From: Wallemia ichthyophaga EXF-994
Lineage: Eukaryota; Fungi; Basidiomycota
Length of the DNA: 32,000 nt
NCBI RefSeq assembly: GCF_000400465.1
Contig: NW_008806300.1
Location: 30,001 to 62,000, forward strand
Direction: 5' to 3'
The translations under genes and the position numbers were made by a program. Below, piece after piece: positions 1,681 to 21,946 of the stretch (position 1 is the stretch's first letter; every line of letters starts with the position of its first letter). A model generated the notes under the pieces. The model did no database searches and was not told the origin of the DNA. It saw only the letters and a program-made list of their open reading frames with translations.

Positions 1681-1691
1681 AGGGGTTTAAT
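1681..1691 (-). promoter_or_regulatory. C-core motif (ATTAAACCCCT) downstream of nad5
   Basis: CCCC lies 42 nt after the nad5 stop; the same motif follows cox1, atp8 and cox3. Confidence 0.55.
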
Positions 1692-1727
1692 AATTTTATT
1701 AATAATAATATTTCTATGTTAAATCAA

Positions 1728-3773
1728 CTATGAAACTAGTAATAATAGTAAAAACAATAATCCTAATTTAATTCCTAAAATCATTGTACCATTTGATAGG
1801 TTTAATAAACCTACTCCTAATACTAAGAAAATAAGAATCATTAAGGCTAACATGATATATAATGAGTTTAATGTAATTCCTCCACTATTTGATAGTGCAT
1901 CAGTATCAGTTTCTTTTAATTGATTTTGACTGAATAATTTACCTGTATCGAATTTTGATAATTTATTTGACATAGATACTAGACTTACTGATAATCCATA
2001 TGGTCCTAAAATTTCAATAATACCTCTATCAAATACTTTAGATAAAATTAATCCATATTTGAAACTTAAATCTGTAGTTAATCCATTTAAAATAGCATCG
2101 AATTTATATTTACCATTGAAGAATGTATAAGATTTATATCCGAAGTTTGATTTTGTTAAATCAATTGCATATTTTGCTGCTGACGGATATTGATATAGAC
2201 TAAATCCAGCTAAGAATCCAATTAAAGTGAAAATAGCTGGTAACCATTTAATAAGAATAGGTAAGTTAAATTCAGCTTCAACTAAGTATACATTATTTGG
2301 GTGTGTAAACAATGCTGAACCAAAGAAATCAGTTCCCATACCTACAAATGCATCTTTTCCAAAGTAACCAAAGAAGATACTCATAATACTTAATACAATT
2401 AATGGAATAAATGTAAATGTATCACTTTCGTGTGTATTTTCATAATCTACTTTTGGTGCATTTGGTGTTGAAAAGAATACTAGTGTTAATAATCTAGTTG
2501 AATAGAAAGCTGTGAATAAAGCTGCTACTGATCCAAGAATAAATACTACAATACCTGGTAGAGAATAAGCACCATATGACAATTCAAGAATTAAATCTTT
2601 AGAATAGAATCCTGTTAAAAATGGTACTGCCATTAATGAAAATGATCCTACTAACATTGCTGTATATGTTAATGGTAAAAATGATCTTAATCCTCCTAAT
2701 CTTCTAATATCTTGTTGATCCGCCATAGAGTGAATAACAGCACCTGCAGCTAAGAATAGCATAGATTTAAAGAAACCATGATTTACTAAATGGAATAATG
2801 CAACATCATATTGAGATAATCCACATGCCATAACCATATATCCACATTGTGACATAGTACTCATAGCAATAATACGTTTCATATCATTTTGTAATAATCC
2901 CATTGAGGCTCCAATAAATGCAGTTACAGCTCCAATCCATACAATAACAGTAAGTGCTGTAGTTGCAAATTCTAATAATGGAGATGATCTTAATAATAAA
3001 TAAATTCCGGCTGTAACTAGAGTAGCTGAGTGAAGTAAAGAACTAACAGGTGTTGGTCCTTCCATACTTGATGGTAACCATGAGTGTAGTCCAATTTGAA
3101 CTGATTTTCCTGCTACACCTCCTAACATTAATAATACAATTAATGATAATACATTTTCATTCATATAAGGTGCAGTACTGAATACTGTAGAATAATCAAC
3201 AGCTCCAATTAACCAGAATAAACCAAAGAAAGCAACAGTTAATGAATAATCACCCACTCTATTAGTTACAAATGCTTGATTAGCAGATTTAGTAGCTTGA
3301 GCTCTAGTAAACCAGAAACCAATTAATAAATAAGAAGCAATACCAATAAATTCCCATCCAATGAATAAAATTAAATAGTTATTACCTGTTACTAATACTA
3401 ACATTGAAAATGTGAATAAACTTAAAAAACTAAAGAATCTTTGATTATGTGGATCATGTGCCATATAACTAATAGTATAAAGATGAACAAGACTTGAAAC
3501 AGTTAAAACAGTAATAAGCATAGATACAGTTAAAGTATCAAATTGAAATGCCCAATTAACAGTTAAAGCTTCAATATCAATCCAACTTGTAAGATTAATA
3601 ATAACTGGTGAATTTGATAATGCTACTTCATAAAAAGCGATCCAAGCTAATGCTGTTGAAATAAATAATAATGATGTTGTTGTGATTTGAGCTCCTTTAG
3701 CACCAATAAATCTTCCTAAAAAACCAGCAGAAAGAGACCCTAATAATGGTAATAATAAAATTGATAGATACAT
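1728..3773 (-). CDS. nad5: NADH dehydrogenase subunit 5 (681 aa, intronless)
   Basis: Motifs WLPSSMEGPTPVSSLLHSATLV, HLVNHGFFKSMLFL, GFYSKDLILE; ATG to TAG. Confidence 0.99.
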   Translation of the reverse strand: MYLSILLLPLLGSLSAGFLGRFIGAKGAQITTTSLLFISTALAWIAFYEVALSNSPVIINLTSWIDIEALTVNWAFQFDTLTVSMLITVLTVSSLVHLYTISYMAHDPHNQRFFSFLSLFTFSMLVLVTGNNYLILFIGWEFIGIASYLLIGFWFTRAQATKSANQAFVTNRVGDYSLTVAFFGLFWLIGAVDYSTVFSTAPYMNENVLSLIVLLMLGGVAGKSVQIGLHSWLPSSMEGPTPVSSLLHSATLVTAGIYLLLRSSPLLEFATTALTVIVWIGAVTAFIGASMGLLQNDMKRIIAMSTMSQCGYMVMACGLSQYDVALFHLVNHGFFKSMLFLAAGAVIHSMADQQDIRRLGGLRSFLPLTYTAMLVGSFSLMAVPFLTGFYSKDLILELSYGAYSLPGIVVFILGSVAALFTAFYSTRLLTLVFFSTPNAPKVDYENTHESDTFTFIPLIVLSIMSIFFGYFGKDAFVGMGTDFFGSALFTHPNNVYLVEAEFNLPILIKWLPAIFTLIGFLAGFSLYQYPSAAKYAIDLTKSNFGYKSYTFFNGKYKFDAILNGLTTDLSFKYGLILSKVFDRGIIEILGPYGLSVSLVSMSNKLSKFDTGKLFSQNQLKETDTDALSNSGGITLNSLYIMLALMILIFLVLGVGLLNLSNGTMILGIKLGLLFLLLLLVS

Positions 3774-3776
3774 TAT

Positions 3777-4043
3777 TTATACTCTTAATGAAATTGTTCC
3801 TTTCAGACGATAATAGGCTACTAATACTCCTAACCCAATAGCTGATTCAGCCCCAGCAACGGCAATAATATAAATAGCATAAGTTTGTCCTAAAATATCA
3901 TTGAATACATATGATGAAATTAAAATTAATAATGTTACAGCTAATAACATTAACTCAACAGAAATTAACATTAATAATACATTCTTTCTATTTAAAACAA
4001 AACCTAGCACACCAATTAAAAATAAAATTAATGGTAATGTCAT
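3777..4043 (-). CDS. nad4L: NADH dehydrogenase subunit 4L (88 aa)
   Basis: FVLNRKN...ELMLL...AGAESAIGLGVLVAYYRLKG; 3 bp upstream of nad5, the usual fungal pairing. Confidence 0.98.
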   Translation of the reverse strand: MTLPLILFLIGVLGFVLNRKNVLLMLISVELMLLAVTLLILISSYVFNDILGQTYAIYIIAVAGAESAIGLGVLVAYYRLKGTISLRV

Positions 4044-4426
4044 TTTAATTTTTTATAACTACAATACTAATAACAGATATTATCTATTAAAGGGCAAAAC
4101 TTTTATATTTTCCAAACAATTAACGTATATAATATTTACCTAAGTAAATTAGACTAAAATAATAATTATAATTATATAAATTATTATTTTAAATCCATTA
4201 CCTATAAAATAAATATAAATTTATAAGCTTATTCTATTACTAATTCTTGATTCTTATATTTATAGGAGTCATTCTAACATAATATAAATAAATATAATTA
4301 AATAGTTAAAATTAATAATTCTAAGCATTAAATAAAAAATAGTAATTATAGGTTAGTAAGCAAGAATATAATTTAGTTTATATTAACTTGAGTTATATAG
4401 TCAGACAATTTTATTGAATAATTTCA

Positions 4427-21023: not shown

Positions 21024-21095
21024 TGGAGTATTAGGGAATCGAACCCTAAACTCTATCGTGCAAAAATAGTGTTATACCATTGTAACTAATACCCC
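21024..21095 (-). tRNA. trnA: tRNA-Ala(UGC)
   Basis: Acceptor GGGGTAT/ATACTCC with G3.U70, loop TT-TGC-AC. Confidence 0.93.
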
Positions 21096-21286
21096 TTACA
21101 AATTACCGATAGTAAATAATTATAAAAATGCATATCAATCATATATTACCTATATCTTATAAAATATTATATTATTTAATTGTAATAATAAGTAAAATAT
21201 AACTTTAAATAGAATATAATTATTATTTTTTATTATTCTTTAGGAGATTTTAGTTATTAACTATTCTGTGTTAAATTGATTATTTA

Positions 21287-21360
21287 CGAGTGCGACCGGA
21301 CTCGAACCGGCATGGCTATTCTCGACAAGAATATATATTGACCGATTATACTACACACCC
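21287..21360 (-). tRNA. trnD: tRNA-Asp(GUC)
   Basis: Acceptor GGGTGTG/CGCACTC, loop TT-GTC-GA. Confidence 0.93.
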
Positions 21361-21454
21361 ATTTACCTTTATAATAAAAATAAATAAATAAAGGTAAATC
21401 ATAAGATTATATTAGTAATTATAATAAATATAGTGTATATAATAGAAGATTATA

Positions 21455-21528
21455 CGAGAAGAGTCCATATTGGTATTGGAGCTTGCTTTGGGAGTCAGTA
21501 GTTTTGCGTTCGAATCGCATCTTCTCGA
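21455..21528 (+). tRNA. trnP: tRNA-Pro(UGG)
   Basis: Acceptor CGAGAAG/CTTCTCG, loop TT-TGG-GA; anticodon stem imperfect. Confidence 0.88.
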
Positions 21529-21946
21529 TTGATAGAAATAATAAATAATAATCTTAAATTAAAAATTTATTTACAGACAGAATTATATTCTTAGAGACTT
21601 TACATATAAAATATAAAACATGTTTTTATATTAAGATAAAGTCCATTTATTACAAATTTAGACTGATTTTGTTGATGTAGTTTGGCTTATTCTTTATATC
21701 TCAGTGTACATGTGGGGTTCTTAAGGTTTAAGGTACACAATTTAGACTCGATTAAATTAATTAAACCCCTCCCGATAATAAGATATCTTATATTATATAT
21801 ATATATGTATAGACGACTTTAATTAATAAAAAATACTACTCTGTAATTATTATACTATTATTAATTAATTAATCCAATTAAAGGTAATAATATATTTGTT
21901 ACATATTTATTAATATATTTGTGGCATATTCTATTTTTTTAAAAAC

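Follow-up and report, generated by a model that had tools for sequence, protein, structure and literature searches.

We have analyzed a C-rich motif, the C-core, in 32,000 nt of mitochondrial DNA from the fungus Wallemia ichthyophaga EXF-994 (contig NW_008806300.1, positions 30,001 to 62,000 of the forward strand; this whole stretch is called the window below). The motif lies on the sense strand behind the ends of mRNA units and belongs to a known class of signal, not to a new kind. It is probable, in our judgement, that it represents the Wallemia version of the fungal C-core, or 3'-end RNA processing element, acting in cis in the 3' untranslated region (UTR) of each mRNA unit. That it functions in processing, i.e. 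that RNA ends at the motif, we infer by comparison. The window is 71% A+T and is fungal mitochondrial DNA (Wallemia, Wallemiomycetes, Basidiomycota); proteins that cluster with its nad5 at 90% identity bear the names Wallemia mellicola and W. ichthyophaga, and outside Wallemia the nearest nad5 proteins, from diverse basidiomycetes, are only ~60% identical.

Once the tandem duplications of the window are collapsed, the C-core is found behind four mRNA ends (nad4L-nad5, cox1, atp8 and cox3) and behind one intron open reading frame (ORF), always on the sense strand. The first C follows the stop codon by 42 nt in nad5, 24 in cox1, 50 in atp8, 41 in cox3 and 26 in the intron LAGLIDADG ORF. These five sites had been listed in an earlier reading made from the letters of the window alone (the sequence-only reading), and all were recovered on the strand and at the distances it gave. 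Scores from a position weight matrix (PWM), described below, are included for three of them.

1679-1699, minus strand: C-core behind nad4L-nad5, AAATTATTAAACCCCTTCA; PWM score 27.2, kept in three other lineages
6041-6061, with a copy at 10742-10762, plus strand: C-core-like element behind the frameshifted LAGLIDADG ORF (stop codon 6026-6028); PWM score 14.5, the weakest
16407-16427, with a copy at 18526-18546, plus strand: C-core behind cox1, TTTTTAATACCCCTTT; the cox1 stop is at 16396 and the atp8 ATG ~70 nt downstream
16680-16700, with a copy at 18799-18819, plus strand: C-core behind atp8, TTAATTAAACCCCTTC; PWM score 30.4
20048-20068, plus strand: C-core behind cox3 with C at -2, TTACACCCCTCC
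21752-21772, plus strand: second copy of the cox3 C-core with A at -2, TTAAACCCCTCC

The window contains eight near-exact tandem duplications (98.5-100% identity), and collapsing them reduces the 32 kb to 18,114 nt of unique sequence. Since these duplications are missing from independent contigs (L001 and L029-L034), the repeated cox1, atp8, cox3 and intron-ORF sites count as one site each. The listed sites are therefore real, but the two cox3 copies are a single site and the duplicated cox1, atp8, cox3 and intron-ORF sites are not independent of one another. The C/A ambiguity noted at cox3 arises because the two copies differ; in independent assemblies the A variant, ATTAAACCCCTCCC, is found. 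The 18 nt said to be common to the atp8 site and the second cox3 copy are contained in 20 identical nt, ATTAAATTAATTAAACCCCT. As had been expected of a dicistron, nad4L has no motif of its own: it ends 3 nt before the nad5 ATG and no C-core lies between the two genes. Beyond the 3' end of rnl (window 30002) the scans detected no motif.

This pattern is well beyond chance. In the raw window the string AWACCCCTY is found 13 times, and in the unique sequence 8 times, against 0.83 expected from shuffles. CCCC overall is under-represented in the raw window (39 occurrences against 54.9 expected). With CCCC frequencies estimated from the genome itself, true sites included, the probability that at least four of five mRNA-unit ends carry CCCC in a 60-nt sense window is ~7e-6, and that of at least seven of eight unit ends in the extended genome is ~5e-10. 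An initial search pattern, TTAAWACCCCTY, missed most sites because these fall in two registers, TTAAACCCC and TTAATACCCC; it was replaced by AWACCCCTY and a matrix scan.

The matrix was trained only on the nad5, cox1, atp8 and cox3 sites and was run over both strands of the 23.3-kb non-redundant genome. This genome includes L001, which extends it beyond the left edge of the window with nad6, nad2-nad3 and atp6. The motif is present behind these further genes: the held-out sites after nad6 (28.9 bits), nad3 (21.3 bits) and atp6 (21.0 bits) rank among the training sites. The sole other match of at least 12 bits is the intron-ORF site (14.5 bits), and a first-order Markov null gives a mean of 1.3 matches at this threshold.

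The same holds in relatives. Two other Wallemia lineages were compared: L021/L022, with nad4L identical to that of the window and nad5 about 98% identical, and the W. mellicola-like L004/L024, with nad5 95% identical. The census covered nad5, nad6, nad3, atp6, nad1, nad4, cob, cox1, atp8, cox3 and atp9; of rns the loci compared hold the 5' part only, in L024. The motif recurs in these lineages behind nad5, nad6, nad3, atp6, cox1, atp8 and cox3 and is found in addition behind nad1, nad4, cob and a GIY-YIG ORF. All 20 sites from the three Wallemia lineages are on the sense strand, with the first C 20-57 nt past the stop codon of the terminal cistron, and in no lineage examined does the motif follow the upstream cistrons nad4L and nad2 of the nad4L-nad5 and nad2-nad3 pairs. 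Gene order differs between lineages (in L024, nad5 is followed by trnW, not trnR), and the motif stays with its gene. The spacers have diverged and the motif has been retained, identity being 81% in the motif core against 62% in its immediate flanks. The consensus of the 20 sites is 5'-AAWTWWTWAWA(C)CCCTYC-3', about 18 nt, with invariant A at -6, A at -4, CCC and T at +1, followed by Y/C at +2/+3. CCCC is found in 18 of the sites and TCCC in the remaining two, both from the L021 lineage. Enrichment, strict sense-strand placement, the 20-57 nt spacing and absence within dicistrons together support the proposal of the sequence-only reading that the motif is a candidate 3'-processing signal.

These data also bear on the suggestion that the motif is a feature of the DNA (the footprint of a mobile element or of recombination, or a replication signal) or simply a chance product of A/T-rich spacers. 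The 20 nt identical at atp8 and cox3 would fit a DNA-level origin, as would the clustering of extra copies in a plasmid-derived insert of L021. We give this suggestion hardly any credence, since the strict sense orientation (20 of 20 sites) argues against a DNA-level element, there is one copy per unit end with no flanking repeats, and the motif is kept while the surrounding spacer diverges; chance is excluded by the scan null, the CCCC probabilities and the shuffles.

Of seven predicted folds, five leave the C run unpaired, and fold energies are no more stable than those of shuffled sequences, which indicates a linear motif. A hairpin or terminator around the motif was considered and rejected, as the sites have no shared fold and z-scores are non-significant except at cox1, where the hairpins adjoin the C-core and do not span it. 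Termination has nevertheless to be weighed in a wider sense, in which the motif would stop the mitochondrial RNA polymerase and each unit would be transcribed separately. A promoter-like motif, ATTWAWAGGTAAT, follows several C-cores (nad5, nad3, atp6 and cox3) by 17-115 nt. It precedes nad4L, atp6, rnl, atp9 and tRNA clusters, always facing the downstream gene, which fits a terminator-then-promoter layout. We take it to resemble the yeast mitochondrial nonanucleotide, ATATAAGTA; its core, A[AT]AGGTA[AT], is present in 20 copies, compared with an expected 11.7 +/- 3.4. Its positions are as follows.

Window, minus strand: promoter-like motif at 4205, 1668, 1056, 21370 and 21153
Window, plus strand: promoter-like motif at 20176, 21390, 23743, 30460, 30885 and 31905
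L001: promoter-like motif at 8159, 7254, 5090 and 4847

No promoter-like motif is found between cox1, atp8 and cox3, however, so that termination at the C-cores would leave atp8 and cox3 without a promoter. The motif also has neither hairpin nor U-tract, and the homologous element of Schizosaccharomyces pombe works in the RNA processing of genome-length transcripts. Termination is on these grounds an unlikely role for the motif.

The S. pombe C-core is described in Shang et al. 2018 (PMC6097661); this paper and PMC4618339 cite Schafer et al. 2005 for it. All mitochondrial mRNAs and rns of that yeast carry a C-core of 4-5 Cs, and 3' processing takes place one or a few nt after it (PMC6097661). 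It appears to involve Rpm1 (Dss1-like) and Rpm2 (Suv3-like) (PMC6097661; PMC3185421), and the protein that binds the C-core is listed as an open question (PMC6097661). The Wallemia motif resembles this element in its four Cs (three in some sites), and in its location on the sense strand of an A/T-rich 3' UTR shortly after the stop codon; rnl lacks the motif in S. pombe, and none was detected downstream of the rnl of the window either. It differs in its longer conserved context (A at -6, A at -4, T at +1 and Y/C at +2/+3, over ~18 nt), in the exception of atp9, and in its distance of 20-57 nt from the stop codon, compared to "a few nucleotides" in S. pombe (PMC3185421).

In budding yeasts, species-specific elements for 3'-end RNA processing (3'-RPEs) are bound by the pentatricopeptide repeat (PPR) protein Rmd9, and the evidence favours endonucleolytic processing, including that of the COX1-ATP8-ATP6 precursor at 3'-RPEs (PMC11789488). 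Like the dodecamer and the other 3'-RPEs of the Saccharomycotina, the Wallemia motif is a species-specific linear element of at least ~12 nt following each mRNA unit; it likewise follows an endonuclease ORF, intron-encoded or free-standing, and it would part cox1 from atp8 in a polycistronic precursor. Zhu et al. 1989 reportedly found that a 3'-end element is needed to express an intron-encoded protein in yeast, a case that parallels the Wallemia motifs behind the LAGLIDADG and GIY-YIG ORFs. The dodecamer is unrelated in sequence to the Wallemia C-core. The S. cerevisiae form, AATAATATTCTT, is nowhere matched exactly in the window. For a AAUAAUAUUCUU-like element there are seven one-mismatch matches, none behind stop codons and barely above chance.

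The sequence-only reading knew of no such signal characterised in basidiomycete-type mitochondria. As regards its presence, a C-core is said in print to appear in Saccharomycotina, Basidiomycota and basal fungi, in silico for the Basidiomycota (PMC6097661). The idea is consequently not new; we found neither a description of the motif specific to Wallemia nor an experimental mapping in a basidiomycete. The published claim is independently confirmed in Cryptococcus neoformans (L027): (T)ACTCCCC occurs on the sense strand 2-28 nt behind cob, nad4, nad5, nad6, atp6, atp9 and nad3, and is absent inside nad4L-nad5 and nad2-nad3. A second basidiomycete contig carries the same kind of motif. Seif et al. 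2005 reportedly mention C-rich motifs in basidiomycete mitochondrial DNAs. In C. neoformans, a distant basidiomycete, the architecture is the same, although the flanks differ (ACT-CCCC, against WAWA-CCCC-TYC in Wallemia), and in C. neoformans atp9 has the motif whereas cox1, with atp8 directly after it, does not.

By analogy with these systems, we propose that long primary transcripts are made first, and that a nuclear-encoded, sequence-specific RNA-binding protein of the PPR or helical-repeat kind would bind the single-stranded consensus. The mature 3' end would form a few nt past the C run, either because the RNA is cleaved where the protein is bound or because 3'-to-5' trimming (by enzymes of the Dss1/Suv3 type) is halted there, and the bound protein would then shield the RNA end. 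The data show the position, strand, specificity and conservation of the motif, its absence from within dicistrons and the want of a shared fold; the mapping of RNA ends to it and the identity of the acting proteins are inferred. Between cox1, atp8 and cox3, where there is neither tRNA nor promoter-like motif, the same event would free the downstream mRNA as well. As in tRNA punctuation, discrete RNAs would arise from polycistronic mitochondrial transcripts, and tRNA clusters do lie downstream of the nad5 and cox3 C-cores. Here, in contrast to punctuation, the motifs precede the tRNAs by a good distance. Punctuation was rejected as the only means of forming 3' ends, the nearest tRNAs being 175-180 nt beyond the nad5 and cox3 motifs; with no tRNA between cox1, atp8 and cox3, tRNA excision alone cannot set the 3' ends there.

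The same positional evidence (sense strand, 3' UTR, one motif per mRNA unit) would suit a general 3'-UTR tag that binds a protein for translation or mRNA localisation and does not set the RNA end, and the sequence alone does not separate end formation from other 3'-UTR functions. We nonetheless consider such a tag very unlikely. The element parts neighbouring genes that must have some processing signal and are not separated by a tRNA, it occurs also behind a tRNA-only unit without an ORF, and in two yeast lineages the equivalents studied by experiment mark 3' ends.

Several observations weigh against a processing element. All of the contigs are DNA assemblies and their ends lie at repeats, not at motifs; contig ends were tried as a proxy for RNA ends and proved uninformative, as all are at repeats or tRNAs. 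The motif follows only one of three cox1 intron ORFs, and copies are found with no recognised gene upstream (at window 20756, four in L021, and a palindromic pair in L004). Finally, atp9 lacks the motif, which is thus not universal.

The absence at atp9, stated already in the sequence-only reading, extends to the window, to nine other contigs and to 2.5 kb downstream in the focal species. Displacement of its C-core to a position behind the GIY-YIG ORF was considered: in the L021 lineage this ORF is intact and is followed by the best-scoring C-core, which fits, but the focal ORF is degenerate, with no C-core within 2.5 kb, and the idea was dropped. Directly after atp9 there are two conserved hairpins.

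30757-30774 and 30778-30811, plus strand: two conserved hairpins directly after atp9, 19 pairs

In the four sequences compared (the window, L011, L012 and L018), which are few, the hairpins show one compensatory pair and one paired indel, and the 3' flank of atp9 is unusually conserved. On this modelled folding they are possibly an alternative 3'-end structure. They form part of a module of ~225 nt, together with a promoter-like motif, that is present as a direct repeat (30743-30967 and 31750-31993, 81% identity) on both sides of the degenerate GIY-YIG endonuclease ORF (~30981-31800, broken across frames). A partial inverted copy of the module lies upstream of nad4L (4049-4146).

One of the copies without a recognised gene stands in a conserved setting.

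20742-20762, with a copy at 22446-22466, plus strand: orphan C-core (site 20756), TTGATACCCCTTA, ~440 nt past trnH with no ORF upstream

An orthologous site is found in the W. mellicola-type L024. The spacer from trnH to this site (20318-20760; L024 13584-13943, minus strand) consists in these two lineages of long near-identical blocks parted by indels and is much better conserved than other spacers. It contains no ORF, and a permissive Rfam scan of it gave nothing credible. The RNase P RNA gene rnpB was tried as a candidate and set aside, since CR-I, CR-V and P4 were unconvincing by eye and two lineages only could be compared. The spacer may encode an unannotated non-coding RNA that ends at the C-core.

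Other copies are found elsewhere in the relatives. Four plus-strand C-cores lie in a plasmid-derived region upstream of nad4L (L021 8300-9800; L022 2600-4110), which has a DNA polymerase B fragment on the minus strand and no intact ORF before its C-cores. Between trnS and trnL, a palindrome, GGGGTAATTATACCCC, places a C-core on both strands (L004 4663-4678; L024 ~4890-4910).

A bolder version of the processing hypothesis, which we hold to be rather doubtful, is that Wallemia runs two 3'-end systems: an ~18-nt C-core read by a protein and cut endonucleolytically, and a hairpin end used by atp9 only, with the orphan C-core ending an unannotated non-coding RNA gene. If this were true, a single cut would both form the cox1 or atp8 3' end and give the following mRNA its 5' end.

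The genes referred to above are placed in the window as follows.

3777-4043, minus strand: nad4L, with 3 nt between its end and the nad5 ATG
1728-3773, minus strand: nad5, forming with nad4L a dicistronic unit, 1728-4043
16497-16643, plus strand: atp8, 48 amino acids, with a second copy at 18616-18762 from a tandem duplication
19005-20020, plus strand: cox3, split by a 206-nt insert at 19757-19962; its true stop codon is 20018-20020
23773-30002, plus strand: rnl, covered by two Rfam matches
30523-30744, plus strand: atp9

The plus strand also bears cox1, with LAGLIDADG-bearing introns, and several tRNAs; an Rfam scan of the window found rRNA and tRNAs only. In the first ORF-bearing cox1 intron, the LAGLIDADG_1 ORF (5088-6028) carries a frameshift both in the window and in L029 (1040-1929; 223 + 73 amino acids) and intact in L032, from another sample (1040-1936; 298 amino acids), so that this homing endonuclease gene is polymorphic for decay.

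The cox3 insert is A/T-rich and lies 20 codons before the end of the gene; its 3' part is copied at 21539-21666. Removal of the insert restores the frame (...AILYW/HFVDVVW...), and the 41-nt distance given above for the cox3 motif depends on it. It is present in independent assemblies, including L029, and absent from W. mellicola-type cox3. It has no Rfam intron match, and a permissive Rfam scan gave nothing credible for it; it may be a very small intron or an insertion.

The tandem duplications of the window are the following.

1-1007, repeated at 1930-2936: unit of 1929 nt
4644-9344, present twice: unit of 4701 nt
12932-14059, present twice: unit of 1128 nt
15147-17265, present twice: unit of 2119 nt
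19834-21538, present twice: unit of 1705 nt
23822-25545, present twice: unit of 1724 nt
26026-27269, present twice: unit of 1244 nt
28253-28512, present twice: unit of 260 nt

L001, an independent short-read contig of the same genome, is 100% identical over 3,087 nt and lacks the duplications; L029 is colinear with the collapsed window along all of its 9,588 nt (99.8% identity) and lacks them as well. For the same cox1 exon, 24 contigs were read, and further runs were noted with the same contigs. The duplications are probably artefacts of how the source record was assembled, if not rare structural variants.

These results leave the current picture of fungal mitochondrial RNA processing unchanged. 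What they add to the C-core idea is a defined consensus of 18 nt, a held-out prediction that came out cleanly, and one clear exception, atp9. In practice, the annotation of basidiomycete mitochondrial genomes could use the motif to place transcription units and 3' UTRs, and it could serve as bait for the C-core-binding protein. For Wallemia itself, they provide a testable map of the predicted mitochondrial mRNA ends in an early-diverging class of basidiomycetes, the Wallemiomycetes.

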